64,000 nt of DNA from positions 4,464,001 to 4,528,000 of the forward strand of contig JBLDXI010000003.1 of NCBI GenBank assembly GCA_047495785.1, written 5' to 3'. This DNA is from Lepidodermella squamata (Eukaryota; Animalia; Gastrotricha). Shown here in pieces: positions 1,663 to 28,835 of this stretch. Position numbers and translations under genes: made by a program. Positions within the stretch are counted from its first letter, which is position 1. Each line of letters begins with the position of its first letter. A model generated the notes under the pieces. That model was given only the letters and a program-made list of their open reading frames with translations. It was not told the DNA's origin and made no database searches.

Positions 1663-2260
1663 AACAAGTGGCATTTCTCAGACATTTGCAGGCTTTAATT
1701 TTCTTCCGAGTCGTGGGATTTTTTGTAATATGCAACAATTTTATGCTAATGGTTTGTATTGAAAACATTTTGTTTGCCCAATTATTTTATACTCGAAAGT
1801 ACGCTGATGAGAGAAGTTGACACTTGATTATTTGAAATTTCTACGCTGGCGTGAGTAAATTTTATATTTCATTGCTATTGAAGATCGAATCACGGGCGTT
1901 ATTATTTTCCTGTGAGCGTCTCTTCTTTCTCCATCTCTCTCTTACTAGTACGGTTGTGTGCCTTGCTGCTCGCTCTACTCAGTAGAGTTTAAACTGACGA
2001 AAGGTTGTGTTTGTTGTTTTGGATTAGCGCTCAATTTTATCTACACTCTTTGTTACTAATTATAACTGTTGAACAAGAATTCCTAGAATTTGGTGCACTG
2101 CACTGTTGCCAGTCGAGGATGCTTCCAGATTCGAGTTTTTGCAGCGATTAATTGTGTCACTTTCGACAATAACGATGGAATATTAAACAAAGCTAAATCA
2201 ATGCTGAATGACCGGTCTTTTTGTTCATCTAAAAAATAGATATTAAAAGAGATTTGTTTG

Positions 2261-5200
2261 ATGCGGCCCGATCACACAACCTGGTATGAGCTCATCTTAG
2301 ACACGACTGTTCTCAATGAGCAACTAGCAAAATGCTCGCTCGCTCAGAAGGTCGATCTGCTCAATCGACTGCTATATCAGATCTATGTATTGAACCGAGT
2401 GGTCGACCTGCCAAGTGCAGTGCAAGCGGTCGCGGCTCAGAAAAAGCAGGACATCCAGGCTGTTTGCTTGAAATTCGCCAACGACATGCTTTGGGACTTG
2501 GAAACACTGCTTGACAATATTCAGCCATGTCTAATCGAAAATTTGCTCAATTACCTTATTCGCTTCACTCGTGCCATTGATCTCGACCCGGCTGCTATTG
2601 ACCAGGTCACCGACGGACAACTCACAATTCAGCAAACCGCCTTAATTATGTGGCATCTATGGGTTGTATTGGCCTGGATAAAAGGAGCTCAAGTTCGAGC
2701 TGGGGCTAAACCGGACCGACAGCTAGCTCTTCCGAAATTAGCTGTTACAGTGGTTTCGGGGTTAACTAACCCTGTAACAACCTTAGCGAGCAATAACGAT
2801 ATATCGTATTCGGTCATCAACAAGGAAATACAAAATTCTGTCGCAGTTTTGACCAAACTCTGCCAGCGGACGGACATTCTGGCGTTTCTCCTACCGAAAA
2901 CCAGCGCGTTCATAGTTTCGCTGAATGCTGAGAGCGGAGCTGAGTTGGCGAGCCAAGGAGAAAACGGCGTGTCGCCCTGTTTCATCGATAACGATTTCGT
3001 AATCATTCGCTGGTCGGTGCTTCGAGCGAAAATCGCGTTCGTCTTGCTGAAGTACAACTTGATATCATCCAACTACCAAGCCGTAGCATCTTTGCACGGT
3101 TCGTTACACGATTTGATGCACGACCTGCCGGCTAATAACGATTTGTCTGAAAAATTCATTGCCACTATCGATCGCCATTACCTTGAAAATGCCTGGAATC
3201 TCAGCCAGTCTGTTGTTAATAGGTCCAACGTATGGAATTCTTTGGTGGATAACATTCTCAAACGCGAATTCGATGCTGCAGAGCAGCTTTTCGCGAACAA
3301 CTTTTCGAAATTCCCGAGTACATTTTTCTATGAAGAGCTGCAGCATAAATCGTATGATGACGAACAAAAGTTCTTCCTAAAACTCTTCTACGCGATTCGT
3401 GCGATTTTCGAGTGTCAATCCGCTAGTTTTGTTGCGAATTCTTGCGGATTAATGTTCACCCAGTCGGGAAATGGCGAACTGCTGGGGAAAGTTCTCGATT
3501 TTTTCGCGAAGAAATGGGACTCGCTAGATGAGAATCAGCGTAAATCATGCGCGATTTTCGCCGAAAATGCCGCTATGTTGGATCCTTCGTTATTTTGCCC
3601 TGTCATCGTATCTTCTTCACTGATTGACCGAGAGGAGTTCTGCGAGCTGTCAGGATTTGTCAATATGTTCTCGAATCAGAACGAAGATCAAGAAATGATG
3701 GATGAAAGTTCGAAAACTCACGATCAGATTTTGCTCAATCAGGTTTTGAAAAGCACCCCACAGGAACAGTTGAAACTCTCATTCCAAGGGAACGAAATTC
3801 GTGCGTTGCTCAGCAGTTTGAAACCGAGTTCGATCGACGAAATGGCCACTCTTTTGCTGCCTCATTCTTCTCTAGTCCCCAGGCGAATAATCACTGCGTT
3901 GGTTGGAGTCACGCAGATTCCGAATGCTAGTTTCACCTTGGCCTTCACCGTGAAGGGGAAGCAATTGATGGAAAAGGGGTTGTTTGAGGATGCGAGTCAT
4001 TTGCTGAAGGAAGCGCAAGAACTCGCGTCGCAAATGTCACCCAAAATATACAATTACGTGTCATGCCTGTACTATTCGTGTGAATTCGAGCGCGGATCAG
4101 TTGTCGGACTTCCGATACTATTCCAAAACGCCTCCACACTGATAAAGGCAGGGCTTGATTCGGGCGATAGTGAAATGCTCGACTCACCTGATGTCGTGAA
4201 TTTGTACCTTTTAATGGTGAGTGGCGTGTTGAATGCGAAAATGTATTCACATTTGATGCGGAGCCCATTGCAAAGCCCGGTATTTCTATTCGGGCAAGTC
4301 ATGGCGTCACTTCACCTGTGTCTATCAACGCAACAGCAGCAGCAACCGGATTCGGCTATGCCGACATTTGGTGGCGATTTGAAAGCCGTTGCCAAAACCT
4401 ACTTTGACATCATTGTTCAGTTGCATCTGAGTAATGAACAGCGAGAGGGTGATAAACCACGCGGGCCGGATTCGCGGGGATCACGGCCGGACACATCTGG
4501 GTCCCGGCCAGGTGGTTTCCGAGATCGAGCTTCGATGGGTCGAGGAGGGCCCCAAGGCCCCGGTGCTGATGGCTACGATGATCCAAAGTGGAAGCCTCAC
4601 TACGAAATTCGGTAATAATCCTCCTTAACTTTGATCATTTTCCAAAGCTATCAGAATTAAAAAAGGCGTGTCAAGTGCCTATTCCTGAATTGTTCATAAA
4701 ATACTCAGTTTTTCGCCGTCTTTCAAGAAGGCTAACTTTGTATACTTTTTCAGGTTTTGGTGGAGCCTATACAGCCGCCTGACTGACCCGCAACTGTTGG
4801 TCTACCTTATCTCATGTTATGCAAAGCTGTATGCCGGAGTAAAATCTGACCTTGCCTGCGACGTTTATAATCCATACTTCAGCATTTGGCCATCTTCTGT
4901 GTCGAGTAGGTACATTTCAACCTATTAAAATGTATGTGATTTAATTTCGAATTCAGGTCAGCTCGACACTGCTTCAAGGTCTAGTATTGGCGAAACACTG
5001 CATTTTCTCCTGGAGACTTTGGCTAAACTAGCGCCGGAAATGGCAATGGCGTGGCGTTTCGCAGGTGATTCACAGGTGGCAGTGAGTCTGCCTGGCAACG
5101 CTATCGCCTCGTATTGCCGCCTGTTCCACGTAGCATCCAAGTCATTCTCATCGGAACCGGACGCTAGCGTTGTTGACGACACCGTCCTCCGGTCGATCAT

Positions 5201-8154: not shown

Positions 8155-8395
8155 CTTTAGGTTTTAGTTTATTCCAGTTTCATCCAAGGGGACGCTATCT
8201 AGAAAATCGATTCGTTTATTTCTATTCAAAACATATATATCGACAGAACACAGTTTAGAGGGCATCAGTATATTCTCGAACAAGGCCGAGGACAAATAGC
8301 ATAAAGTTTTATACACATTTTTTACACAGCAGACTGCAAGAGAGCGACCTGCGAGGCGAGATTCATCGGCGACTTTCCGCTATTGGAAAGAGCTG

Positions 8396-11052
8396 TTATT
8401 GGCAACCGAGTACGGCGAACTTGGCCGTCATCCACCTGTGCTCGGAGCGGGGTAAAAACCGTACATATCGCGCACGCACCGGAGGCCAGATGCGGTTAAC
8501 GACGTTGCTGATAGCATCGCGATTGCCGGGGAACACGCGGTCGACCGGCTCGCTGTTGTCGTTGTTGTTTTTCAGGGTCGACCACACAAGCGGGCGCGAT
8601 GGCGAAGTTGCGATGTAATATGATGTCACCCACTCGTCATTGGCCGGCGAGCCTCGCGTCACAAAGCCGGTTATTTGGCGCTCGTAGCCTAGGTCGATTT
8701 GCAGGAAGGCACCAGGCTCGTGATTGAGCCCAGTCGACCAACAGCATGGCGCATCGGGATTGGCTGACACTCGCGTAAACAGAGCAAGGTATGGGTAGTG
8801 ATTGCGCCAATATGAAGAACCCTGGACTTGCTCGTCTTTGATGGAAACTGTCAAATCAGCGTCGCACATGACATCGCTGGCGGCTGAAGTCGTCGAATAG
8901 CGCAGCTTAAAACCGCGGCTTTGAACGTGAGGATCTGTCTCGAAGCGCAGGAACACACTGCCGCCAGGTATGGTCAGCGAGGGCGGTTGGCCCTTGCCAC
9001 AAAGTGTAGCCACTAACGGCGCGTGGTTGCCTTGGCCTGAATAAATCAGCAATCGGTCGCTCATGCATGAAGCCGAGTCTTCGAGGTCGAAGTCCTCGAA
9101 TTCGATGCGAACAGGAACACCAGGTGGCTGTCGGATCAGCCATTGGCACAGATCGTTCGGGTTGTAGTCACCTGAGCCGTAGTTTGGCGACAAAATGTAC
9201 CCAGTGTCGTCGTTGATCAGTTTCTGCCGACCTTGGCACAAGCTCGATCGGTTAATTTTGATAAAATCGGCAGCTGAAATGGAAAATTATATGAGATTAC
9301 CAAAAAAAGCCGTAAGCCACAGAATATCACGTCTGTTACACAGCCCATAAAAATACTAAACTTAATATCCAAATTGAAAACTTACGGATTTCACTGTAAT
9401 ATGCAGAAAAGCCTGGAAGAGTTTCGCTCGCGTCTGTGATAAATTCCAGAAGTAGAGCATTTTGGGTACTAACAATGTTCCCAGGCAGCTCGGTTCCACA
9501 AAGTTGCGCCAATAACGGAGCCGTGTTCGAGCTGCCGTCATAAATGGTCAATAAATCGCCCGATGTGAGGTCACAACGACCCGATTTAGGCTTGCTCAGC
9601 TGGAAATCTTCGAATGATAAGCGGATCCTGCCAGGCGCAGGCACTGAAATCAGCCACGCACAGAAGTCGTTTGAGAAGTAGAATCCGTTCCCGTAGTTCG
9701 GGGATTCAACACGCCCGCGAACGCCGGTTAAAATTGATCGCTTTCCGTTGCAGCGATCACGCTGACTGGTTATAAATTGCGGTAATGAGCCGGCAGAAGC
9801 ATTAATAGCGGCCATCAGACCGAGCCCATTGTTAGGCTGTGGTTGTTGGAACACATTATTCGTCGGAGCAACAGCAGCAGCTAAATAAAGATAAAGTAAC
9901 AAATTAGCCACACAATTCTGACAACCACACTAAGACAAATGTCTGATTTTGATGTTTGATAAATCTTACGTTCAGACGATATTTTCAGATTGAATCCCTC
10001 CTCTTCCACGTAGCCGTTGCTGATGAACTTGAGGATAATGACATTGTTACTCGAAAGCAATGGCTTGGGTGTCTGAAAGCCGCAGAGACGGACAAGGCTT
10101 GGGTGATGATCGCTCGGCCCATCGATGATTTCGAGCGAATCAGCCATGCACCCAGCACTGTCTTGTAAATTGAACAGCTCGAAGGTAACGCGCAACACCT
10201 GACCCCGATTAGCCGCCATCACCCATGTGCACATATCATTGGGTGGGTAGTTGCCATCGGCGTAGTTCGGCGACACGAGCGTCACCTCTTGTCCGTTGTT
10301 AATTTTCGTCTGGATTGTCTGCCCGCCACACCGATCGCGAGCCATGCCGTTGTTCAACCCGGCCTGAGCTGCCTTCGACCCAGGCACTGGTGGCAACGAG
10401 TCAATAATGTTGTATGTTAATTTGAAGCCTTTTCGCTCTGTCGTTCCGTCGCTTTTGAATTTGAGGTAAACGGTGTTTGAACTGGAAATTATGTCCAAAG
10501 GCCGGAACTCGCCGCAGAATTTGCCGAGCTCGCGAGCTTTATGATCGAAGCCGTCGAATAATTTCAAGTAGTCGAAGCCACAATGATTATCGCCTTCAAC
10601 GTCGAACGTGTCAAAATGAATGAGAATGCGCTTGCCATACGGCGCTTCTATCCGCCAACGGCAGTAGTCGTTTTTCTCGTAGAGGCTGCCGAAGTTTGGC
10701 GACAAAATGACGCCGCTAACGCCGCGCAGCAGAAACAGTTCACCATCGCATTTTTCACAGCTAGAATCGGCTACCAAGCTCCACAGCACTACTGCTAATT
10801 TGGTCACCCACAGCTGAAAGTTGAAGAAAAGCACTTTAGAATGATGACGCGCCAGTTATAGAAAAAAGCGATAGGGAAGCAATTAATCATCCACTGTATT
10901 AGCTCTAACGTAACGTAAGGTGGAATAGAGCACTATACATCGGAAATTCGAACCCAATGATTTACTATAACTGAGAAAATCCACTGATATAAATTAAAAT
11001 GGTGAGAAAGGGTTACTACCAAAGTGTGGGTAGACGTAATCCTCACCTTCAT
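8396..11052 (-). CDS. Secreted protein with four CUB domains and a C-terminal F5/8 type C (discoidin) domain
   Basis: Four C..G...SPN[YF]..Y...D.C.W.I...F..F.[LV]..C..D.L CUB repeats; FA58C motifs LQIDLG..ITGFVTRG..WVTSY..VFPGN..ARYVRFLP..VLGC; a 6-nt first coding exon ATGAAG|GTGAGG (11052-11047) spliced to 10813 gives signal peptide MKLWVTKLAVVLWSLVADS; no TM helix. Confidence 0.85.
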
Positions 11053-11920
11053 GATCTTCGCGATTCGTCACGATTATCTCAATTTTAAATGAGTAACTTG
11101 ACTCGTTTTACATAAACAGTACAGCTACTACCTACGATGATATTATAAAAGTATGTATGTTGTTTTTTCCTTGCGAAGTGACGTTGCCGTAACGTAGTAG
11201 TTGCTAAAAAGTGGTGACGAAGGAAACAGTTGTACTGCAGCACTAAGAAGTCCGGATGTTAATGAACAAAAACGGTAGCAAAAATTTCAACTGACATAGT
11301 CATATTGTGACAGTATGGGCCACAACGGCCGAGCTAATGTTTTCGCTGTGTAGAAACAATGTTAGCTGCAGGTAACTCGGGTTCCCTGATGAACTGATGA
11401 TCAAAGTCGGAGAACAAAAGCTGTTAAGAAATGCAGATGCTAGACTGCACACGCATTGAAACACGGCCGGCCGCTTTTTGCAGCCTGTGCTATCCCGACG
11501 ACGTACCTACTCATTATTAGTGTATCGCGCATCGGCTATAAACAATTCGCAGGTGAATTGATGGTGACACCGAGATGCGCGCGAGGACGCCAGCATTATT
11601 CAAGTACGACGCCGATCGCTTAGCTTTCGTTTGTTGTCGCCTGATGGTTCAAAATGTGGCCTTTTACGTCTCTGTCTAGTTCAGCCCATGGTCCATTGAT
11701 ACAACACGCTTCGGTATCGTTGTTTACAGCAAACCACTGCAAATTTCGCTGAATCACTCAGGTATACCAAAACGCTTAACAAAATTTTGAACCGAACATC
11801 GGTGCGAAAAAACGCGCACCGAGCAGAATATAATGATTCATTAATTGAAGCTAATTTGTAATACAAAGTTATAGGACGCCACCATCCGTGAGTTAATCGG
11901 TGCTTTTTTTGTTCTGAACC

Positions 11921-13302
11921 ATGCAAGCTGTTCTGTTATTAGTAGCACTGTTGCAACTTTGCAGTTGTCTCGAGGTCTTCCGTAGATACCGAGGGGGAGG
12001 CATTTTAGACTGCCGCTATACATATTGCGACCCAAGTTGGCTCGAATCTTGTGACGCGGATCATCCTTGTCGGGACGGCTCATGTTGCTCGTATCGTGGA
12101 TTTTGTGGCAGATCAATAGAGTTCTGCACGAACGGGTGCCAATCGAACTGCCAGTTGTCTAGTCCTGCACAGGAGCCGAGAGCATCAGTCGCAACTGCTA
12201 CATCTGAAGTTCTTCAGGCTGACCTCCCACCGCTGCCGAATCCACCTGAAACTCCAGGGATTTCGGTGCAGCAGCAACTTGACGACCAGTTAGTTGAGAC
12301 CTTTGAAGATCCATATCCTGGAATTGATGATCAAGTCTGCGGAATCGAAAAATTTCCTGGGTCGACTCATGTGCCGTGGCAAGTTCGTTTGTGGATTCAC
12401 AATAAAGACGGTAGCACAACCCAGTGCAGCGGTAATAATAATTTTAAACCACTAAAATGAGAAGGCAAATCAATTTTCAACCGCACACAGGTGCTTTGCT
12501 GAATTCTAGAACTATCGTAACATCGGCGAGATGTGTTCAAGGGCAAGAAAAAACAATTAATGAACTAATTCCTCATAATAAACTGTTGTTGTTTAGAGCC
12601 GAAACTATTCAGGCGCATCTTGGCGATTACGACACGATAAAGACTGACCCATGGGAACGAGTCGTCCTATGTTCATGCCGCTGCAAAATTCATCCTGATT
12701 TCGATGGGCGCAGTCCAGACCATGACGTTGCTCTGTTGACTTCATGCACAGGTGCTCCATGGGTCGAGTATTCCGAACACATCAAACCCGTTTGCCTACC
12801 CGCTTTACTACCCAGCCAAATGCAAGATAAATCGAAAATTCTGCGGAAATATCGAAATGCCACTATCAGCGGTTGGGGCAAGGCGCGGGCAGGGCTGACG
12901 AACTGGTGGGCGTTCCGTATGAGTAGAATCAGGGCTCGTCTACTCATGCCTGACGTGTGCCACGAAATATGGAACCAGCTGAATGTCGGGACAGGTAACT
13001 CGACCCTGTGCACCATGAGCAATTTCTGCCGTGGCGATTACGGAGCGCCGCTTTACGGCTACATCTGGAGCCGCCGCGCTGTTCTCATCGGAATTACTTC
13101 ATTTTTCAACTCTGATTGTGGCAGACCGTGAGTCGAAACTGACAATATTTCACACGTTTTATACTGCGAATATTTTAGGCATGCCCTGACAGCTCTATCA
13201 GATGTCATCAACAATTTAAGCTGGATTCGGAAGGAAGCGAGTGGATCGCTGCATTTTGTCGCCATCGATCAATCGTCAACAACAAGAACACCCATAATTT
13301 GA
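11921..13302 (+). CDS. Secreted hevein/chitin-binding type 1 domain + Pro-rich linker + inactive S1 serine protease homolog
   Basis: Signal peptide; C-x4-CCS-x2-G-F-CG-x4-FC..GCQSNC; PWQV..CSGALL..TSARC, HDVALL, PVCLP, SGWG, CRGDYGAPL, GITSF; exons 11921-12431, 12491-12542, 12597-13127, ~13179-13302. Confidence 0.85.
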
Positions 13303-14085
13303 AGAATGATTTCAGATTTATTGTTTCGTTTTCTCCATTTTTTTCGGTCGAATTACTCTTGTTGTTGTTATTGTTGTTATTTTAAAATTTACAAGAACTA
13401 GTTGTATAATATTGTCATATAAACAAGCGTCAAAAATTTCCCTATTTCAACAACGTGCAGCAGCAGGCCTTCGCTGATGAGTTCAGTAGTTATAAATTTG
13501 TTGCCTCAAAAGTGAGAGTGAGAAATTCACAGTGCACGATGGTTGAATCTTCGTTTTATATTATAGCTTCCAAGTCGTTAGTAATGAGATTACAATAATA
13601 ATAATAATAGTTTAATAAATGCAATAATAATGCTGTTCGTAATAAAAATGTGTTGAGAATAAAACAGTGCATCCGCAGCTATCGTTCGTCGAATTTTTAT
13701 CACAAGATGTGAGCGCGTTTCTCGTGCAGATTCCGCGCCCGAATCAACTACTCCGACATTCAACAACAAAAGACAGCGAGAGATTTCGGTTGAAGAAGGA
13801 AGCAGACGAGAAATGATAGCACTTCCGAACTGTAGTTATTGCATCTTTGAGAAAGAAGATTTTACACAAGGCTACTATGGTACAAAACAACCGTTACACA
13901 TAAACAATGCAACAAGAAACAACAACGCTTCAGTTCAGTAAAAATGTAGGAAGACCCGTTTTTTTCCTCACGATCAAACCAACGATCGCAAGTGTGTCAA
14001 CACAACAAAGTCAGGCAGAGCATTTGACAGCAGATTGATGTTATATTGAACAAATTGTTGAAATAGCTTAATCTTCTCCTCCGCC

Positions 14086-14642
14086 TCAAACGTTGAGGTT
14101 CCGACTGCGCCGTGGCGGGGCGGTTTGCTGCGCGTTCGACGACCGGCGCTGCTGCTGCGGCGGCGCCTGGCTGCGGTGGTTGCTCGAGCCGTTGGCCATC
14201 TGGTTGGCGGAAGACGAGTGCCGCATCGCTTGCTTGCCCTGCTGCGGCCGGTGCACGCCTGGGGGCCGCGACGGCAGCACTGGCGAGGCGTCTTGTTCAT
14301 CGAGCAGGTAGGCGCCCGACGGGTGGGGCCGCACCACCATTTGCGGGTTCGATTCGCCATGCATTTGTTTCCGATGCGCCGCAATAGCCGCTTCTATTTA
14401 AATAAAAAATAACCACGATTCAATGCAAAATCCACCTTGAAAAATTAACTCACTCTTCTGTTTTAACACGTCGCAATAGCAGACAATCATGACGTAGATA
14501 AAATAGATCACAGGGATGCCGAAAGCAACAAAACTGTTCCGAAGAAAAATGAACTAGATAATTCCAGAAAAATTCGAAATAATGAAGCGACTTACACGAC
14601 CCACCATTCTCCAATGTCGAATTGAATACCGTCATCAGCCAT
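14086..14642 (-). CDS. Uncharacterised 144-aa single-pass (type III) membrane protein, 3 coding exons (14642-14596, 14533-14454, 14393-14086)
   Basis: GTAAGT/CAG and GTGAGT/TAG introns of 62 and 60 nt join in frame: MADDGIQFDIGEWWVVFVAFGIPVIYFIYVMIVCYCDVLKQKKAAIAAHRKQMHGESNP...RNLNV*. Confidence 0.75.
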
Positions 14643-15442
14643 AGTAATAGAGATGTGTTGTTAAAATCGAGCTGTTTTATAAGAGCTGATCACGGGATGC
14701 TGCGGAGCAAATGTGTTGTTATTAAATATGTCTAAAAATGAGCGTGGATATTGAAATTTCCATGAATAGGCAGCAAGAAGTGTAGCAGAAAAAACACGAC
14801 CCGCAGCATGTATATAGTCAGTCATACAAAGCACTACTACGAGTAGTGCAAGCGCACGTATTGTGAAAAGCTGCCCGCTGTTATAACTATTTTTCATGTT
14901 ATTACTGCAGTCGCTTATACGTTTAGGCATACGTGTGTGCCGTACAACGATGCAACGTTGCTAGAACACTACAATAGCTAGAATAGTAGCATAGGCTATA
15001 CTTTTCATGCTAGTGAGCACCAGCCAAACATGCTAGTATGGAACATAAGCCGTCGCAGTCGCATTCACGTGCGCGGGACAGACCGTAGGTGGCACCGCCT
15101 CGACTCAAGGCGGCTAATATGCGAGTCGTGCGCTGTCTTTTCGTGACGTCTTTACTTCCTGGCTAACGCGCGCATAGATATTTACCGATGCCAACAATAA
15201 CAGGGCTGTATAGGGTGATATAACCCGCTGCGGAACCACACAAACAAAAGCCGCGTGTTTGTTCGATTGGTGACTGCCGTAGCCATCCATCTTATCCTCA
15301 TTATTAGTAAGACGCGCTGGTGTTTGAGCATTCACTAATATTATGCTTACGGGTCAAACAAATTTAAAACAATCACTTTTAATAAGATTCTGATGAAAGA
15401 TCACGATTACCACAGTTTACAAAATGAACAATCAGCTAAAAA

Positions 15443-17161
15443 CTAGACACCCTCCTTCGCACGTTTACCGTCGCGCTTAGACGCCCTGCCTTCGGCCTTG
15501 TCGGCTTCGCGACGCCGCTTGTTCAGCGGGTTTCGAGGATCAAACATGCTGTAACGCTCTTCGTCAACGCGAACAGCCAGTGGATCAATGACTCTGGTTT
15601 CAGTCGTGTCCAAGTTATTAATATCTTCCTTATCGCTTTTAAAAACGAGCCGACTTCGCATCCATGAAAGATCGTCAGCGCCACTCGGTTCGGCAGTGTC
15701 TTCGCCTTCGCTCTCGCCATCTTCATCGAAATCTACAAGCTTGGTTGTAACAGACTTCAGTTTAGACTGGAATTTCGCCAACAGGTCCAGCGTGGCTTTC
15801 TCGCGTTCGGGACCTTTTGTGACAGTGCTCGGTTTTGTTTGTTGACGGTACCGCTCCCGCTCCTCAGTCCATGACGCTAGGGCTTCATGCTTTGTGTCGG
15901 CCTTCTTCGTTTCTTCCAATTTTGCCGCATCTTTCGCCTTGCTTTGCTGAACAAGCTCTTGCTTCAACTTAGCTATCTCCTCTTTGATGGCCCTTCGCTT
16001 CTCTTTTTCGGCTGAATCTTCTTCGTCTTCGTCTGAAGAATGTTTCCTCGACGTTTTCGATCGTTCCTTACCCGCAGCTCGATCGTCGGCTGCCTTTTTG
16101 AGTGCTCCGGCTAATCTGCTGGTAACGGCTTTCGAATCCACTTCAATTTTTTCGCTTCGATCGGCTTCGTCTTCCGAATCGTTGTCACTGAGCGATTTCT
16201 CTGGAGGTGATTTAATCTCCTCTTCCTTTTGCGGTTTCGAATCGTCAACAGCTGGTATGCTTAGCAATCGAGGATCATTGGCAAGATCGTGACTACTTTT
16301 GCCTTTCTTATGTTCTATTTTCTAAATTTGAACACTCAAAATGCCAAAATTTATATCATAAGAAGCAATTTGCGAACCTCAGTGACTTCAGCAAGTACTT
16401 CATCATCTTCCATTGCTTCTTCGCCAAATGAAAGCAGGGAGAAATTTCTGAGGTGGGATGATAATGACAACAAGAAAGAGGTAAGTCACGAGAAATTACA
16501 TACTTGGTTGCTTTCGCGGAAGAAGATGGTTTTTCCTTACTGCGCTTCTCTTCTTTAGATTTTACAACTCGAGGCGTAACATCTGGAAAAGGATTGCTGA
16601 TGACTTCACTTCGCAGAATTTTATGAGGGTGGTAAGGTCTTTCATCATGATCAACAGCGGGTTCGCCCAAATTTATCATATTGTAAATCGTATCCCCCAC
16701 AACCTGCGAAACAGATGAATAAAGAAATTTTACAAAGATTACCAGTACGCAATTGAAAATCATACTTTTCCGAATATGGTGTTTTTGTTGTTGAGCTCGG
16801 GGCATTTGTCCAATGTGAAGAAAAATTGACTCTTATTGTCATCCGGCTCGTTACTCGCCATCGCAACTAGACCTCGCCTCACAAACCGCAGTCGCGTATG
16901 GAATTCATCTTTAAATGGCTGACCGTAGATGGATTCGCCTCCGTCACCTGTGCCTGTGGGGTCGCCACCTTGAACTAAGAAGCCTTTGGAAACGCGATGA
17001 AATATGGTTTTGTCATAGTATCCATCAAGGCAATGCTGAACAAAGTTCCTGCAAGCCTTGGGAGCTTCTTTCGACCAAAGTTCGATTTCAATTGGACCAA
17101 CAGATGTCTCAAGCAGAACTTTTCCATTGGTTGGCGGTTCCAATATGTATATATTACTCAT
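15443..17161 (-). CDS. CWC27: Spliceosome-associated cyclophilin CWC27
   Basis: MSNIYILEPPTNGKV..ELWSKEAPKACRNFVQ..GGDPTGTGDGGESIYG..DEFHTRLRF; charged C-terminus with FDPRNPLNKRRR. Confidence 0.95.
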
Positions 17162-18110: not shown

Positions 18111-21100
18111 ATGAGTGGACTTATTGATTTAAGCCGCGATAAATGGGACCTATCTGACACCGAGGCTCATTTGCTCCTTCTACATTTGCTCGAGCCAGCT
18201 AAAGTATGTTTCTGTTCTGGGCATTAGTTTTATTCCAATATTTGTTCATGGCAGGATGAAAACTTGACAGCTCAAGTTCAAGAACTTTCTTTTGTTCATC
18301 ACCATTTCATATTCGTGGTTGATTTATCTCCATCAGTATTTTCAGTGGTACGTTGACGTTTGGGCGAATTAAGCGATTTTTAGCATTTCAATTTGCAGGC
18401 TTCTGATGGCGATTATGTGGTATACGATGGTATCTTAGCATCGCTGTTCCTTACATTGAAGCGCCTTATCGCTTTATCGACTGAGTGGAAAGAATCTGCT
18501 GTAACTCAATCCTCACCGCGGGAAATACGAATTTCCGTCGTGGGCTTTTCAACAGTTCACACGCCTAATGCAAGACAGGCTTTTCTGCTGTGTGCTCCTC
18601 TGACTGAAGAAACGTTGAAGTATTTAATGGAGAAGCTGTCAGAATATGTGAAGCTTGTTGTGCAACAATACGAGCCGATAGCAAAAAACTGGCTGGTTGG
18701 CGATGTAAGATCGTTATAAACCGCAAGCATGTCGCGTATTATTTATTGTTCTATAGAGCGACGATCAGGTGCTACTTATTCCTGGCCTGTTCGAGTCAGA
18801 TGCAAGTGACGAGGATGATGAAATTTCTCGCAGCGAGTTGAAAAAGAACAAGCCAACGCTGGAACTCGGCACAAGTGACATTGCCATGATCGATCAAATG
18901 AGAATTGCTCACCGCATAGCTCAACTGACCGTTGGCAAAGCTAGAACAGGTATTCCCTTCGAAACGTGACAATGTGCTGCTAATTTTATATTTAGTCGCT
19001 GTATTCATCACGGATGGTGTTACTGATTTGCCCACGCCTGCGGTTGTCGATTACTTGATATCACAATTTCGATGCAACTGCATTCCGTGTTGTTTTATCT
19101 TACCATCGTCGACGGAGCCATCCTATCAGCATAAACGAGTCGGACTGGCTCCTTCGACTTACTTTGCTCATGTTGTCAACAGGTCACTGCTTGACACAAT
19201 AGCCGCTGCGACGAATGGCGTTGTTTGTCACGTTGCTCGTCAGCCCAACGGAACATTTGTCCTTAGCGAGACGGTTATCGAACGGCTATTACACGAGAAA
19301 ATTCCCTGCGTCGGCTGTCACGCTTTTGATTCGTCATCACCCACCCCGCAGCTTATTCGCATTCCTTATCGAAAGCTACCGGTGCCTGCAACAGTCACTG
19401 TCTACGCCCTGGTTTCAACCAGATTTTCGCACGGCTTTAAGAAATGCCGATCTACCAGACCGGAATCACCAACTGATGCTAATTTATGCTTGAAGTGGCA
19501 CCCACGAATCACCATCCGTTATTTCATATCACAAACCATTCTTGAGGTGTGGCTCGAAGGAGAACCTGAAATTCTACAGGCTGTTTACCCTATGGATGGC
19601 GAGGTGGACTCTGGTTCTGTCCCTAATATCGAGGAGACCTCTGCCTCGCGACCGCTTCGAGGCAATTCAAGGCAAACAATTGCGACTCAAACCGGCAGAG
19701 ATTTGTTTCGTTACATGAATCGACTTGCTGTAATCGACGATTTGATGATGAAAATCTATAACACTGAAGCCGCTACTATGCCAGCTGATCCGGTGCTTTC
19801 TGCTGTTCCTTTATTCGTTTATATTCCTAAAGACCGCCAACTAGCTGCTCATGAGTCACTGCGCCAGCGTGAAACTGGCGGGAAGAAACCCAGTGCCTCA
19901 GACGCTGAGGGTGAAGTGGAAGATATTTCGGCGTTTTTGTCATATTGGCGAACTGTGGCAACGTTGAACTTGGCGACGATGAAGTTAATTTTCCTGACTC
20001 GCAATATGCAGTATTTTCTAAATTATGATCGACCCTTGCCAAAAGTATTACTTACGGCATCTAGCCCTGGCGTTGGACCCGCCCCTCGCCAAACCTCGGC
20101 CTTAGCCTGCCGCTTGGCTCTCAACAACATTGTAACGTATCTTCGAACGAGTTGGGCAAGCTTGGAGTTGATTGAAAATCGTGCTTTCGTCAAATTCATT
20201 TCCGACCCGCTTTACTGCATCGTTCGACTTTCAGATCGCCATTCTCCCGTTGCGAGTATAAACGTGTCGTTCTTGCGAGGAACTGAGAAAAAGATTATTG
20301 AAGAAGTTCTTGGGGATTTAACGCGGCATTTCGAACAAAGCATTCTATCCTCGACGAAGCATACTGAAATCGCTGCTCTGTATCCGCTTTCGCTTCACCT
20401 TGATTCCTTTCTCGTTGAACCAAATGCGTGGTTGGCGAATTTTACATCGTTGAATATTATTCCCGAGTATCACACGCTTTTGACGTCGATTGAACACAGC
20501 CAGCCGGCCCGAATTAGGCCGATGACCAACGCCACGCTACTTTCACGCATCTATCGTGCAGACAGAGTCGTTTATGAGTTGTGCTTACCTGGCGGAATGG
20601 CTCCTCGAGCTCTTTTCAACCGAGTTCTCCGCGCCTTTATCAAGCGGAAATTAGCGAATGGCTACAGATTTTCCTCTGCTTCGGGCAGTTTTCTTTGCTT
20701 CGGAATGGAAATAGAGGAATCCAGCGACGAATCTGTTGAACAGGCGGAAAATCGTTCGTTTTTAAAGCCGTTCATTCAGTACAATTTGTCATACTCTGTC
20801 GAAGAATATTGCCCTGTTACGAATGGACAGGGCGAAAGTAATGGTAAAAATAGCAATGTTCACAATACTAAGACTGATGGCGAGAAAAGTGATTCAAGGC
20901 CTTTGAGTGCGGCAACGACTATGCAACCACCCCGCAGATTTTCTGTTGCTGTCGGCGTTTCTGGACTAGAAACACTCATGTTTCGTATTGTGACAGAGCT
21001 GTGGGCCCTGCCGGTCGGTGTTAACGATAGCGCCGGGTCGGGTCATAGACTCGACAAAATCATCGTCGAAACTCACAAACAAGACTTCCAACTGATCACA

Positions 21101-24100
21101 AGGCTTTATGCGTATTTTGCATACCGACTGGTCACAATCATTGCGTCTTCGCAGAAGTCGCTAATCGAGAAAAATCCTGGCGGCTTTCAATTGCCGCCTT
21201 CTAATCAGTGGTACTGGAACCCACCCGATTTCCTCGATCTACCTCCAGGGAAGTCATCGGTTCTCGATTTATTGTGCCATCCAGTGTTTACTCTTTCCGG
21301 CCGACCAGACTTATTTCAATTTCTGTCAAGCTGTCAGGAAGTTGTGATTCGGATGCCCTTATTGCGTTGTTCAACTGCTGATAAATCACACCCGGATAAC
21401 GTCGCGACAGCAACTATTCTTCGCGACTTTGTGTTGAAGTCATTATCCGAGCGTTATCCTTATCGAACTATAGTTCGCGGACATTGTCCCAAGCCGAAAG
21501 ATCGCGGTTTCATCACTGGCAATGACGAAAACAAGACACCGATCGAGTGGACAATGTTTGCGATGACTGCTGATCGGCCAGAACATGTTATTCTGATATT
21601 TGTGCCCACTCAAATCGAACCTTGGCTTGGATCAGTTGAAACCAACTCGTCGAGCAGCTTCATTTCGCTCTACCTTTATGTTTCAGTGTTTGATTGGCTG
21701 CTGTCAGAATCACGCGATGTCATCCGAGCGAAACCTTCCGATTTGGTTGTCGATGTTGCCGAGGATATCTTTCCAGACGAAAAATATGACAGGGAGTCTA
21801 AAACGCCATCGAAACGTCGGGTAAATAGTGCTAACAACGACGCGGCTGACCTGCCTCACGATGGCGCCGAATCGGCGTCTTCAGCTGACACCTACTTACT
21901 GGGTTCTGTCCAAGGTATCAAACTGGCTGACACCTTTGCGTCGGTCTACGTCAGTGCAGTTTACCGATGCTTGTGTCAGAAGTTGCCGATCTGTTCGACG
22001 GATTTCGAACTTGCGGTTTCATCGCTTTGTACCGAATCCGTCTGTTCTGAAATTGACTTGAAGCAGTAAGTTGTTTGAGCTTCGCTAATTTTTTGGATTA
22101 TGAATTGTTATCAATTTTTAGACTACTGCTTTTACATGGCACCACATGCCCAGAAGACCAACCATGCGTGTCGTCGGGCGAAGAACGACTCGCTGCGGTA
22201 ATCAGCCAATGGTTTCAACCCGTGCCATGCGCGCCGAACTATTACTTCTACAAAGTGCCAGATCACCCACTGGGTAGCTCGGAAAACGAAAGCGACGACG
22301 AATCGTATCAGCCGCCGGTATCCCTAAATGAGTCGTACGATGCCACACAGTGGCAGCAGCAGCTTACTTCATCACCCGAGCGAAACTTTGATTTAGACGA
22401 GGTTTCGAATTCGGCCAGCGGGTTTACAACAACCTCTAGAACAACCTCCTGCAATGGTTTCGACGACGATTTGCGCGAAGAGGAGGCGAGTTCGATGATA
22501 TCAGACGATTCAGCAATGCCACCGCCACCGCTTTTCCTCCACTGTACTTGTTCGGTGATGGTAAAATCTATCGGGGACCAACCGTCGTCGCTGATCCATA
22601 TCCCCCTTAATAAACTACCTCACTGTTTGCGTTCACTACTGGCCAATTCCGATGATTTCGATCGTTCCCTATCTGCGACTGAACTGGTAAACTCGGTCGC
22701 TTCAGTCACGCTCGATTGCATAGTCATCGCCCCCAATCCGTTACGACTACCCACTTCGGTTTCTTCCACACCAGTTCATCGCAATGCACCGACAGTAAAT
22801 TTGGCAAATGCGATTCCTGCCAGTGACGGAGCTGTTATTGGCGGTAAGCGAAACGCTCGCCGCCGCATGTCATCAGCGATGGTGAAAGACTCGGACGGCA
22901 TGGGTTACTTTCAAACGCTATCACTGCATTCTTCGCAGTATTTGGCCGTATCAGCGCTAGTAAAGCAGTTTCACTGGCTGGTTTTCGACTCGATGATCAT
23001 GTCAGTGCCGTCGAGTGACCTCGATTTAGCACAGCTTGCTGCTCACATTGTCGACACGCTTCGAATCGCAGACATGTCGCCGTTGGATTCTTACGACGAG
23101 ACGCAGTCTTTGCCTCCGTTTTGCCCCCTGGTCAAGCGCAAACGACGTGCTTTAGCTTTCGTTTACGGCAGCGAACAGAGTCAGCCTGTTTTTGCTGAAA
23201 CTCTAACGGGATGGAACATGAAAACAGCAGGGGCAGTAGTTAGACGACTTGGGTCTTCCTTCTATTTCTATTGCGCTATTCCAGTTGCGCCGCTGCCTGT
23301 CACTTTTGACGCGTTGAATCGATCTTCGCTCGGCTCAGGCTTGAGCCAGGCAACTTCAAATCCGGGTTTGAACCAAGTGGCTACGAGCGACCCGCATTCA
23401 CCAGCCCCGATGAGCGCGATTTCTGAGGGCGATCTCTCATCATCAGCTCGAAAGCCAGCGATACATCATCCTGCTTCGCACACATTGTTGCCTCATCTGC
23501 GGCGGCGCCACCAGTCAGCTGCTCCTCTTCTTCCGCTGAGACCGCCGCCAATGCCACAGCTAATTTCAAGGCCTCGTCAGTTGTCATCTTCACGCAGACA
23601 AGTCGAAACAACGAGCCCACCCTTGGGCCTGGCGGCACCCATGTTTCTGAGTCCGCCAAAAAATAGCGTAGCCAACGATTCTATGTCAACTGAAACATCA
23701 TCGCCTCGTTCAATCTTTACTGGACGTGGATATGAATCGGACAGTGAATTGACTAATGAACGAGATGCGGATGATTACCAGCCATTCACCTCTGCCTCGC
23801 CCGTCGCTGTTCACACCTCACAGACCTGCTGGATTTTCTGCAAAATTGGCCACAAGCTGTGCAAATTCTTCCTATACGTACCATGGCTGTCTCGAAATTC
23901 AGACAAAAGTTCAACAGCCTCAGCCTTGATGACGGAGCTTCTCGAGACCGTCGACAAGTGCGTACGTCGCACGAACCAGCAGCTTTTGCTGCGAGAAATG
24001 CATACGTCCCTCATGGCTAGCAGATTAATGCTGCACGTCGATGAAAGCGAGGCGGCTATGCGTTCTTTTGCCGATTTGCCTATGGACTCGAAGCTGGCCG

Positions 24101-27100
24101 ATGAGTTGTCCTTGCCGCCTGAGCATTTCGCGTGTCCAGTGCAGTACACTCATCGATTTCACCTTCACCCTTCTCTTCGGCTTGGTATGACTGCGCATCA
24201 TCTACTACACGGCCCGACTGGCAGACCGAATATACCAACGGCCGGTTTGTCTGATTCGTCAAGTGCGTCGATGACCACGCCAGCAGGGCGGGCCCTGATT
24301 GTTTTCAGGGGTTTCCTGCAAAATGTGGCCATCATGAACCGAAACGACGTATTCACGTATCGCCAAACGCGAGAGACCCCGCTCAGTGACTTGCTTTACT
24401 ATTTGGTTTTCACGAGTGGCCAAAGTGCTTTGGATGATCGGTCTGACACGGATTCTGTCATAACAGCGGCGTCGAGCGGAATCGAAATTTCTCTTGCTTC
24501 CTCGGTAATTCATCGCGATTTATCAACAACCCTCGCCACATCGCTATCGAGGTCGTCTTCCCGGTTGATGGCTATGGTTTCGCAAACAAGTTCTACTGAT
24601 ACGCACTCTACGCTACTCACGCAGTCTTCATCGCAATCGCAACACTTGGCCCAGTCTTACTGGCTCGACATGCACGTCCACGGCTTGGACCCGCCGCATT
24701 TGGGTGAGCTAGAAAAGCTGATTGCTGGACTGCAGCACGCGTTGGATAAAGCAGTTTTGCAAAATTTGCTGTCATCACTTCTGAAAAACCCGATGCATCG
24801 CTTGACACCGCCCGACGTTGACTTCATTCAACACTCGCAGAATCCAGCCCAGATATATTTCGCCTTGCCGTCTTTGGTAGCTCATAGCAGCCCGCAGACA
24901 TGGTTCGTATATTTCCGCCAAATTTTTCTGGCCGGCTACGCACATCTGCCGCACTTTTCACTCGTGCCGGGCGGGCACTTGTCTGCAAATGAAACGATGA
25001 CAGCTTGTCGGTTCCGCGATAATACTGTTTCGCCACCGAGCCCGCTGGATCCCAACAATACCCTACTTTTCTTTACGCGAATGGAATCGGCTCTTTCCGG
25101 CATTGCCTGCGTCAACATCTCGCTTGTCGGACCGAACAGTGAAATAACTACCAGCCCGGTTGATTGGTTGCAGATCCTTCGATCGTCATCGCCAGCTCAG
25201 ATTTTTGCTGAACAATTGAAAGGCTTCCGAAAGTCAGAAGTTCGGGCCGCAAATGACTGGTGTCTGCTAGTTCGAGTTTGGGAGCAAGGCACAGTGCTGT
25301 CCGATTTGATCATAGCAGTTGAACGATGCATTTCTTCAGCAATTGCGGACATGATTACAGAGGGCGTTCTTGCCATGTCCAGTCAGCGCCGAAATGCCGC
25401 TCCGTCGTCGCCTCCCGGTTCGATAGCTGTGGCGGAACCGCAAAATGAAGACATGGTTGCGACCTGGTTGCAACTAAAATCGTTCCTGGATTTTACCAAT
25501 AGCCAGCTAACACCTCCTGCTCCGCTGACCGTTCGTCGATTCGCTATTCCGTTGATGCGTATTCCATTTTGGCTCGACCAGGCGTGCCGCAGCCTGTCGC
25601 CCCCTTCATCGGCACTCTCTTCTTCAGGCAACGTTGCTGAGTTGAGCGGAGCTAGGCTATACAGAGGCACAGCTTCTAGCACTAATAAACCGAGATCGAG
25701 TTCATCGAGCGAGTTCGGCGCTGAAATCACTGGTAAATTTACACTGGTTGGTCTGAAAGACGCTACATCGACTACTAACAGCCACCGTAAACTGTCATCG
25801 AGTCGATGGCTGATTTTTTCTTCTAATCTACCGCAAGATTGGAAAAAGCACAATCCGTCACCACCCCCCGCAGTCGCGTCACGCCAGTGCTTCGCCATCA
25901 TCGATGTCACGCCGAATGGCGTTTCATCATGTATTGCGTCTTGTCTCCTCTACAACGTCATACCTAATAGGATCGATAACGTATTCAACGAGTTGGAGTC
26001 CACTGCCAAGCTGAGTGACTATCAGATTCGTTGCGGGACGGACGTTTCCCTGCAGAAAGCTGGCCTATTCTCGGCTCAGCACATCTGCACCGAGCGTCCG
26101 GGTGCCACGATTTTCGAGATGATGAATGTGCTGAGTGGAAAGCCTGAAATCATCAAACAAGTGACTAGCAAGTCGAGAAATCTGCCGTCGCAAAATCCGG
26201 CCGCGAAGCAAGAGCCGTGGATGCAGCTGCCCTACGGCCGCGTTGTGCTGCGCGATCAGGTCGCTTTGCCTTACAAACTGCCATCAAGCTCGACTTCCAA
26301 CAGCGGGCCCATCACGGATATGTTTCTTGACTTTTGCCGGCAGATTGCTTCGGCTGCTGAAAGTATTCACAGGAGACGCGAGGCAGTCATTTTTGCTGGC
26401 AAGATTGTGCAATCTTTGGAGAATCCAACAGAACCAGACTCAGTATCAAGCGTTGTCAGCCAGTTGCAGCTACAACAGCAGGCGCTTGGGCATTCCGGTC
26501 GCTTATTAACTTCATCGCATCATCACATTGCCACGGCAGCGAAGGCTGCCCGCCATCGTGGTATGCCTAATAAAATGGCTCGGCGGCCAAGCGGCCAGCG
26601 ATTGCAAGCCATTCGATCATCATCAGGTTCCATCGCCACTCTTGACTCCACGGCTATCAATATTCTGCGCCATTCCTCTCGACTTCAGCATTTCGTTTCC
26701 GCCCCTCTGGTGCTCAGTCCCCAGTGGAGAGCAGTGGCAATGGCCCGAGCGGCTTCTACGATATCTCCAGGTCAAACTAAGCCGCTCCAATCTCTACCAG
26801 TCGAAGAACTCGGTGTTTACACGTGGTTTCGCGATGAATATATTGCCTATATTCAGCGGTAAGCGTTACACTTTAATGCAACTCCAGCCTATTTACCATA
26901 TTTGCTATCTCAGGTCACTTTTTCTGTTTGAGCTTGTTGTCGTCAACTTGACTCAGCAATTTGCGAATCAGGGTTACCAGAACCCACCGGTTTTCCAGCC
27001 GCAAATGAGCAATGTCTCCGGTCAAATTCATCCTCAACACACGCAGCCAATGTTTTCATTCATGTCTACACCTGGCGGCCTGTTGCTCTTCCAATGCGAT

Positions 27101-28835
27101 TTGAGAGGAATCGACCTTCATCTGCGGTAATTTTTCCTTTATTTTTTACTTGATTCATTCCTTTATTCAAACCATTTATTGTAGGCTTTACACATGGGAA
27201 CGATACAGGGCTGCTCCAGCAGCGGCGGCTCGGTTTTCAGAGTTGATTGACCGATGCCGAACGATGACACATCTGCATTCGTTTTGCTACGACCAGCACG
27301 TTCGCATCGTTCAGTCGTGGATTTTGGACGGAACTTCTGTTCTGCCCTCGAGCTATGAACACGCCGCCATCTTGCGAGATTTGTGCACCGTGTATCGCCG
27401 CACGCCGCTGTTCGCCGCCTCCTTGGTAGCGTCAGGTCGCACGGACATACCCGGGCTCCGTTTCATGACCGTTCGCGAGCTGATCGAGCGCATGAGATCG
27501 GGTAGATTCGAACGCAGCGATAACGGCTTCGAGTTGACTGTTCGTGAGTTTTCGCAGCCTGTAAAAAGTCTTCAGCAGGACAACGAAACCGTCGTCGAAC
27601 TAATCCTAGCCGGGCGAGAACGCTCAGACAGTCTTGTCATTAGCACCACGCTGACCGCAACCATCAGACCTGTTGTCACTTACCCTGACAACGGTCCCCC
27701 AATCATGTCGGAAACAGACCTTGAGATTTTGTTCTCGGTTGCAACAACGACAAAGCGATGGAAAGAGCTGTTCCCGCTGGAACTTCGTGCTTTGAGTCTC
27801 GACGAAATCCGAGCAATTGATGGGCCGAAAAGTAAAACAATCAAGGATGAACTGAAGGCATTAGCATCCGCTGTGCCGCGTTACCGACCAGCGTCGTCGA
27901 ATGGCGATTACCTCATCTGCCTGACTGCTGCGGCTGCTCTTCGAACACTTGTGCTTGATTGTTACCGGCAAGGGCTAGCCGAATCCCAATGGCGCCGCAT
28001 CACGCATGCCGCTGATATGTTGACGCAGCCGGCTCTCACGCCCGGTACCTCGCGTACCACTGAAGTGCTGACTTGCGCTGACCTGCGCGCCCTTACGAAT
28101 GATGCATCATCGAACAGTGCCGCGGCGTTCATTTCCCGACGTAGCACGCCGGATCAGACGCCTCTTTCAGCAGAAGCCGTGGGTGTTTCAATGGGCTGCC
28201 AGGCCTTGCCTTTGTCGATTGTAGACTCACGGCTTGCCCGACTTCGTCTCGCATCGCCCACCCCAGCTCTTGCAAAGGCGTTGCGTCAGCGCTTCCCGCA
28301 CACTGTGTGGCTGCCTGGCCCGCCCTCGTTGGACGTGAGGCCGGAGTTCACCCTCATCATTCCGCAGGATAAAACTTGCGCTGTTGTAATCGCATGGCCA
28401 TGCTCGCCCGGTTCAACCAACGCCGCCGCTGCGACATCGGCTCCATCTTCGTCAATAAAGCAGCCCTTTTCAACGCCTGTTTCATCGTCAAAAGCTGGAT
28501 TATCTTCGATGACAACTACGCCCGAAATCGCCAGCTCCGGTAATGTGTCTACAACGTCGCCGCAGCCGATACAAGCTAGCTCGTCAGGGAAAAAGTCGGT
28601 GCTAGAGGCGGCTGAATTGTTTTTCCTTTCGCGGCACACAGCTGCGGCGCAATCAAATCTGCTGTCTGAAGCTTCAAAGCCGGGCTCTCCTTCTGATATG
28701 TGTATGCAAGCCCATCTTGGCCATTCTATCTATTCGAACCCGTCGCACCGAGTTTTCACCGAGTCCATCATCAGTTGTCTTGCTGCTGATTACATTCGAC
28801 ATTTATTGGAACGAGCCACGCCAGGAAAATATTGA
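18111..28835 (+). CDS. SZT2: KICSTOR subunit SZT2, multi-exon (5' start uncertain)
   Basis: FVVDLSPS, VAVFITDGV, PPLFLHCTCS, RRTNQQLLLREMH, FACPVQY, SRLQHF, THLHSFCYD blocks in SZT2 order; >3,000 aa total; short GT-AG introns bridge the ORFs. Confidence 0.85.

Follow-up and report, generated by a model that had tools for sequence, protein, structure and literature searches.

Described systems closest to the locus

Pseudo-proteases that stand behind small recognition modules are key organisers of the immune and clotting cascades of invertebrates, and, to our knowledge, almost everything that has been learned about them comes from arthropods with clip domains. A gene that follows the same design principle with another recognition module, of plant or fungal type, was analysed here in a small invertebrate, the gastrotrich Lepidodermella squamata. 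The analysis covered a stretch of 64,000 nucleotides (assembly GCA_047495785.1, contig JBLDXI010000003.1, positions 4,464,001 to 4,528,000), which is termed the window and to which all positions refer unless another scaffold is named. The gene lies at 11921-13302 on the plus strand, and its product of about 405 residues joins one hevein (CBM18) domain to a trypsin-fold (S1) domain with a dead catalytic triad, for which reason it is designated the hevein-pseudoprotease gene. It is a real, expressed and lineage-restricted gene, which is conserved in a second species.

The nearest parallel in layout is offered by the serine protease homologues (SPHs) of arthropods, including the clip-domain SPHs (CLIPA), the masquerade-like protein of crayfish and the cofactors of prophenoloxidase activation. 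These are secreted proteins with a small disulfide-rich N-terminal module, a cysteine-bearing linker and a dead S1 domain, an arrangement that is shared by the gene described here as far as its predicted product can be read, and they act by binding rather than cutting, often in an immune context. The present gene differs from them in carrying hevein/CBM18 in place of the clip domain, in having lost His57 besides Ser195, and in lacking an activation cleavage site. A dead S1 fold has also been reused as a binding module behind recognition domains in the vertebrate pseudo-proteases haptoglobin, HGF, azurocidin and protein Z; their N-terminal modules (CCP, kringle and Gla/EGF) are unrelated, and no close sequence relationship to the present gene was found.

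Chitin-binding modules have likewise been joined to S1 domains in one secreted chain, as proposed here, in the insect multidomain proteases Sp22D of Anopheles, Tequila of Drosophila and SP23 of Apis. Sp22D binds chitin, Tequila is induced by infection, and all three are active proteases furnished with CBM14 (peritrophin-A), LDLa and SRCR domains (PMC1761132), whereas the present gene combines a single CBM18 with a dead protease; no CBM14 was detected in its first exon, for which Pfam gives Chitin_bind_1 only. A third precedent is provided by amphioxus, in which BbtPGRP1-3 fuse a hevein-like chitin-binding domain to a PGRP amidase; chitin binding by BbtPGRP3 was shown to proceed via two Trp residues, and horizontal transfer with domain shuffling was proposed by the authors (PMC4610682). 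Like the present gene, these encode animal proteins in which an N-terminal signal peptide and a hevein-like domain are joined to an immune-type module, although the partner is an active PGRP amidase there and a pseudo-protease here, and the Trp/Trp pair there is replaced by Arg/Phe here.

The hevein domain itself belongs, by hidden Markov model, cysteine pattern and predicted fold, to the same family as the plant and fungal hevein/CBM18 proteins (hevein, wheat germ agglutinin (WGA), the pokeweed lectins, class I chitinases, fungal chitinases and chitin deacetylases), and its short first loop (C-x5-C) resembles that of many fungal-type domains in the alignment. Those proteins, unlike the present one, possess tandem hevein arrays or have glycoside hydrolase or deacetylase partners. 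Precedents for the design therefore exist in the arthropod SPHs, the CBM14-protease fusions and the amphioxus hevein-PGRP fusion; no description of a hevein/CBM18 domain fused to a trypsin fold was found in the literature, and the pairing is apparently undescribed while its principle is known.

Structure and expression of the gene

The first open reading frame on the plus strand runs for 179 codons from the ATG at 11921, and the complete model comprises four exons summing to 1218 nucleotides, that is, 405 codons and a stop. The features are listed below, together with the corresponding states in the orthologue of the second species and in contigs assembled from two sequencing runs, X1 and X2.

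11921-13302 (+), hevein-pseudoprotease gene, four exons, start ATG at 11921, stop TGA
11921-12431 (+), exon 1, a single uninterrupted frame in the translation that runs from the predicted signal peptide through the N-terminal extension, the hevein domain and the linker into the S1 domain; followed by a canonical GT donor at 12432; X2 contigs span 11987-12430
11921-11986 (+), putative signal peptide and short pre-region, residues 1-22, hydrophobic core AVLLLVALLQL, read from the translation by eye
11987-12049 (+), N-terminal extension, residues 23-43, YRGGGI-DCRYT-C-P-WL-ES, two extra Cys
12050-12151 (+), hevein/CBM18 domain (Pfam Chitin_bind_1), residues 44-77, eight Cys, sugar face S-Y-R-G-F ... 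F
12152-12337 (+), linker rich in Pro, Gln, Thr and Glu, residues 78-139, 62 residues long (28 in the orthologue)
12338-12431 (+), start of the S1 domain, with Cys140-Gly of the linker, no IVGG, PWQV and Cys169 (Cys42 in chymotrypsin numbering)
12432-12490 (+), intron 1, 59 nucleotides, GT-AG, phase 1; skipped in X2 contig 7; absent from the orthologue, which reads through
12491-12542 (+), exon 2, TSARC motif, in which Arg (12529-12531) replaces the catalytic His57
12543-12596 (+), intron 2, 54 nucleotides, GC-AG, in frame and free of stops; skipped in X2 contig 7
12597-13127 (+), exon 3, most of the S1 domain, with Asp102 at 12724-12726, Tyr for Ser195 at 13039-13041, the sequon NATISGWG at 12856, and the Cys of the 122, 168-182 and 191-220 positions
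13128-13178 (+), intron 3, 51 nucleotides, GT-AG, phase 2; predicted only, outside the placed contigs; position kept in the orthologue
13179-13302 (+), exon 4, C-terminal S1 helix (…LSWIR…), non-conserved tail, TGA stop

Splicing was revealed by X2 contig 7, a contig of 588 nucleotides which maps to 12197-12430, 12490-12541 and 12596-12868, with introns 1 and 2 spliced out. The joint across intron 1 is given as 12430/12490 (cut +1, GT..AG) and that across intron 2 as 12541/12596 with an ambiguity of 1 nucleotide. Run X2 is tagged "RNA?", which is a guess about the type of run; a contig from which two introns are missing at splice-site boundaries indicates spliced RNA as its source, and hence that the gene is expressed. 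The first 29 nucleotides of the same contig map to 12939-12967 on the strand opposite to the remainder, which is probably an assembly artefact.

An earlier three-exon model, in which 12543-12596 was taken as coding, had to be abandoned, since the X2 contig splices this segment out and the orthologue has a GT-AG intron at the codon position matching intron 2. If it were retained, intron 2 would add 18 residues just past the His57 equivalent, in the "60-loop" of the protease fold; it is spliced out in the sole contig seen.

Entry of the product into the secretory route is suggested by the hydrophobic N-terminal leader, by the many paired Cys and by an N-x-T sequon that is conserved between the two species (NATISGWG here, NVTISGWG in the orthologue), all of which would fit a secreted protein. 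Conservation with the orthologue starts exactly at residue 23 (YRGGG), where the putative leader ends, and the N-terminal extension is near-invariant between the two species, its AlphaFold2 model having a predicted local distance difference test (pLDDT) score of 47-53, which is of low confidence.

The hevein domain and its sugar-binding face

Residues 44-77 had been assigned to the hevein family in the initial annotation, and several lines of evidence bear this out as a genuine hevein/CBM18 domain. Against Pfam Chitin_bind_1 (PF00187), exon 1 reaches 29.1 bits and the domain taken alone 32.9 bits, both above, though near, the gathering cut-off of 27.8. All eight hevein Cys are present (residues 44, 50, 55, 56, 62, 69, 73 and 77; pattern C-x(n)-C-x4-CC-x5-C-x6-C-x3-C-x3-C), in columns that are conserved or nearly so over 37 aligned domains, and a phmmer search of the PDB returned pokeweed lectin-C (E 7e-10), followed by about 20 further hevein/WGA entries (lectin-D, class I chitinases, WGA and hevein). 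In an AlphaFold2 model of residues 22-85, computed from the 37-sequence alignment, the core reached a pLDDT of 77-87, and the top 22 Foldseek matches in the PDB were all hevein/CBM18 domains, with root-mean-square deviations of 0.8-0.9 Å over 30-36 columns; as the model rests on a hevein alignment, this agreement is corroboration and not an independent test. The product of the orthologue carries PF00187 in a precomputed table.

In hevein numbering, the sugar is contacted by Ser19 and by aromatic residues at positions 21, 23 and 30. The face reads C-C-S-Y-R-G-F-C-G ... F-C in both species, so that Ser19, Phe23 and Phe30, three of the four contacts, are kept and position 21 is Arg. The caution attached to the initial annotation, namely that the W21-equivalent is Arg with Tyr one residue before, was accordingly correct, and the pair is invariant in both species. 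Of 35 related domains, 24 have Tyr or Trp at position 21 and 11 have a non-aromatic residue, which is never Arg, and only one has Tyr at position 20; the Tyr20-Arg21 pair occurs in no other hevein domain compared. The pair may be compatible with ordinary binding in which the stacking residue has shifted, or it may signal an altered ligand, and Arg21 is the chief uncertainty about the function of the protein.

The second of these options, carried to its end, would make the protein a lectin-pseudoprotease of new specificity, in which the hevein module has been re-tuned to an acidic GlcNAc (N-acetylglucosamine) glycan such as peptidoglycan, to a sialylated or sulfated sugar, or to a protein. The identity of S-Y-R-G-F in both species and the rarity of its central residues among the relatives speak for such a change, and departures from chitin are on record within the family, as the hevein-like domain of amphioxus boosts activity on peptidoglycan (PMC4610682) and sialic acid is a further ligand of wheat germ agglutinin (PDB titles). 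On the other hand, an aromatic residue at position 21 is dispensed with by nearly a third of the related domains as well, and the remaining classical contacts are intact, so that a re-tuned ligand is regarded as rather unlikely.

The pseudoprotease domain

The second module is recognised by Pfam Trypsin (PF00089) with 48.3 bits against a cut-off of 20.6. Its best solved matches are animal proteases, the closest being the arthropod immune clip proteases PPAE-I and Grass (weakly), which belong to the very system in which the SPHs act, and also protein C and others. The triad was placed by alignment to the beetle pro-phenoloxidase activating enzyme PPAE-I (2olg, E 3e-9), in which TSARC falls on TAAHC (His57 to Arg), HDVALL on HDIALI (Asp102 kept) and GDYGAP on GDSGGP (Ser195 to Tyr). 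The Cys of the 42-58, 168-182 and 191-220 disulfides are present in the sequence, along with Cys122 and its partner in the linker, Cys140; the S1 pocket is non-conserved.

A zymogen activation site, that is, a basic residue followed by IVGG, was not found. The region reads C-G-IEKFPGSTHV-PWQV, with 10 residues between Cys-Gly and PWQV, and C-G-QMMVKGRV-PWQV in the orthologue, so that neither species has a conserved cleavage motif. The initial annotation had described a dead S1 domain (His to Arg, Ser to Tyr, Asp kept, no IVGG), and both the PPAE-I alignment and the translation uphold every element of that description; judged by its residues, the domain is a catalytically dead non-peptidase homologue. 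No CLIP domain was matched by Pfam up to E 10. A feature search of the ESM Atlas was uninformative, with scores of at most 0.80; one weak language-model neighbour cluster was 35% CLIP.

An orthologue in a second species

Exon 1, used as a HMMER query on a collection of 1.84 billion representative proteins, gave 95 matches, only one cluster of which (P0001/P0096) is orthologue-like. P0001, a protein of 167 residues with 51% identity (E 2e-22), sits on the metagenome scaffolds ENA ERZ23486787 and ERZ23486764 (L001 and L002), and its gene model ends at the first intron, where it was truncated by a prokaryote-style gene caller. The gene on L001 is intact, with 371 codons in four exons.

L001 6001-6500, exon A of the orthologue
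L001 6554-6693, exon B
L001 6753-7137, exon C
L001 7200-7290, exon D

Its layout matches that of the window gene, with a leader, the YRGGG extension, the hevein domain, a short linker and the S1 domain. Two of the three intron positions are common to both species, including that of the GC-AG intron 2, and each species has one private intron. A tblastx comparison revealed collinear synteny on both flanks of the gene (L001 2984-11073 to window 8387-17161).

The triad motifs of the orthologue are TSAKC, NVDFAIV and GDIGSP, which correspond to Lys57, Asp102 and Ile195. Both species are dead at His57 and Ser195 with different residues, which points to an old inactivity in a gene that has been retained. 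Catalysis would either have been lost before the two species split or have been free to drift afterwards, while the frame stayed intact.

These comparisons bear directly on whether the gene could be an artefact, such as two merged genes (a small hevein peptide and a protease homologue), a decaying gene, or a contig from a fungal or plant contaminant. Suspicion might be raised by the hevein score near its threshold, by the absence of the genome's own protein from the protein collections and by the guess on which the RNA status of run X2 depends. The hevein domain and the first 30 S1 residues nevertheless lie in one exon and one frame in two species, the four exons are open with standard GT-AG or GC-AG sites, an intron-less contig can only be spliced RNA, the orthologue shares two intron positions and both flanks, and the neighbours are animal genes; an artefact is therefore largely refuted and is considered highly improbable. 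Between the hevein module and the protease there is no intron, and hence no remaining sign of shuffling.

Conservation is distributed unevenly along the protein. The N-terminal extension and the hevein domain form its best-conserved part, with 39 of 55 residues identical (71%), while the pieces of the S1 domain are 49%, 40% and 38% identical, the C-terminal exon is 34% identical and the linker is unalignable. For the alignment to the unbroken exon of the orthologue, the peptide encoded by the end of exon 1 was set directly before that of exon 2. The neighbouring genes are 56-94% identical between the two species, so that the hevein-pseudoprotease gene is much less conserved than its surroundings and has evolved faster.

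Further carriers of the domain pairing were sought in several ways. Within the 95 matches to exon 1, no trypsin-like region was found outside the P0001/P0096 cluster. Word searches with the 211-residue read-through piece and the 176-residue exon 3 gave no match, which says little, as the length limits of these searches exclude full-length relatives and the domain has diverged strongly. Patterns from the hevein part gave none in the JGI metagenomes. Patterns from the protease part led to seven JGI loci, which were rejected as ordinary active trypsins (TAAHC, GDSGGP) on contigs of 50-57% GC with no hevein motif. Other proteins of the same design were thus not found in the sequence collections searched, which lack this genome's own proteins.

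Proposed function

The reading that is preferred, at a probability of roughly 0.5, is that of a sugar-guided adaptor or recognition protein. The product would be a secreted protein of two modules, in which the hevein (CBM18) module most likely attaches the chain to a polymer based on GlcNAc, such as chitin, and the trypsin-fold domain, deprived of catalysis and of the activation switch, most likely serves as a platform for binding other proteins. Such an adaptor would mark surfaces that bear chitin, the likeliest being the walls of fungi or chitin from other foreign sources, and would bring partner proteins to them, in a manner that parallels the action of the arthropod SPHs as recognition and cofactor proteins. 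A role in immune recognition is plausible on these grounds, and the partners might conceivably include a protease cascade. The faster evolution of the gene relative to its neighbours would fit a protein at the interface between host and microbe.

Several considerations weigh on the other side. The arginine at the key stacking position 21 may entail a weak affinity for chitin or a different ligand; the fast evolution could reflect relaxed constraint instead; and with neither a clip domain nor a cleavage site, the arthropod mode of activation does not apply. We know, moreover, of no protease cascade in this lineage.

The same anatomy would serve equally well for a matrix protein of the animal's own chitin, in which the hevein module anchors the chain in the cuticle, the jaws, the eggshell or the gut lining, and the dead protease either acts as a structural or organising element or protects, as a shield or decoy, against chitinases and proteases of foreign origin. 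Adhesive and developmental roles are exercised by the masquerade-type protease homologues of Drosophila. A matrix protein would usually show more conservation than this gene does when set beside its neighbours, however, and animals normally use CBM14 for their own chitin, so that a matrix role is held to be possible and somewhat unlikely.

The wider meaning of the gene is that a design principle familiar from arthropods recurs in a small invertebrate with a recognition module of plant or fungal type, in a gene that was kept long enough for the residues at the dead positions to differ between two species. Should the lectin module bind chitin or a novel glycan, it would provide a testable way into pathogen recognition in a neglected lineage, and would illustrate cleanly how an animal protein can take up a domain of foreign type. 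Should it bind nothing, the protein would count as just another secreted product specific to its lineage.

Origin of the hevein domain and genomic neighbourhood

The gene had been attributed to an animal at the outset, and its neighbours, together with the short spliceosomal introns, corroborate this. Two of the neighbours are informative.

8396-10834 (-), gene for a secreted protein with 4xCUB and F5/8-type-C (discoidin) domains, head to head with the hevein-pseudoprotease gene at a distance of about 1.1 kb
31570-33069 (-), Fizzy-related (CDC20/FZR) gene, a single open reading frame of 499 residues

The divergent arrangement with the 4xCUB-discoidin gene recurs on the orthologue scaffold (L001 2993-4890), and the two genes may share a promoter or have a joint function. 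The Fizzy-related protein is 60-66% identical to brachiopod, mollusc, annelid, arthropod and other proteins, with no named species clearly closest; because it matches many bilaterians alike, the genome is placed among the bilaterians. A Fizzy-related fragment of 367 residues in an ENA metagenome is 96% identical to it, which implies that close relatives of this animal live in environmental samples.

The hevein domain has different affinities. Among its 20 next-best relatives, 13 are named, and none of these 13 is an animal protein. Six are fungal (Dispira, Tieghemiomyces, Dinochytrium, Piromyces, Aulographum and Pyricularia, which comprise early fungi and ascomycetes), three belong to land plants (the crucifer Hirschfeldia, the fern Adiantum and the moss Ceratodon), and the others include one marine protist transcriptome and two metagenome chitin deacetylases. 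A longer second Adiantum protein (P0220), from the cluster of P0041, is annotated as a serine/threonine protein kinase. The domain fits a non-animal type, and a horizontal origin is plausible. The relatives do not pin down the donor lineage, and a tree of a domain of about 35 residues, with relatives that are mostly unnamed, would not resolve it.

A bolder scenario combines these elements. An animal lineage would have acquired a hevein domain of non-animal type, which was fused to a trypsin fold that had already diverged and was re-tuned via the invariant Tyr20-Arg21 to a new glycan specificity, for instance towards an acidic polymer with GlcNAc such as peptidoglycan. The protein would then form the recognition arm of a new extracellular defence complex in a little-studied invertebrate phylum, possibly with the 4xCUB-discoidin neighbour. 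This scenario is regarded as improbable.

A second version of the hevein-pseudoprotease sequence was encountered in both runs X1 and X2, which stem from different studies and years. It differs at nine of 141 positions (12086-12226), with five synonymous and four non-synonymous changes, three of the latter being located in the linker. Its presence in both runs would be better explained by fixed heterozygosity, clonality or a recent duplication than by chance polymorphism; no second copy of the gene was found within the window.

Further long open reading frames were observed on both sides of the gene.

2258-4615 (+), open reading frame of 785 residues, no Pfam match
18932-28835 (+), three long consecutive open reading frames (1045, 1595 and 561 residues), 51% GC with strongly negative GC skew, no Pfam match at E 0.001

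The three consecutive frames at 18932-28835 may together constitute one giant gene.

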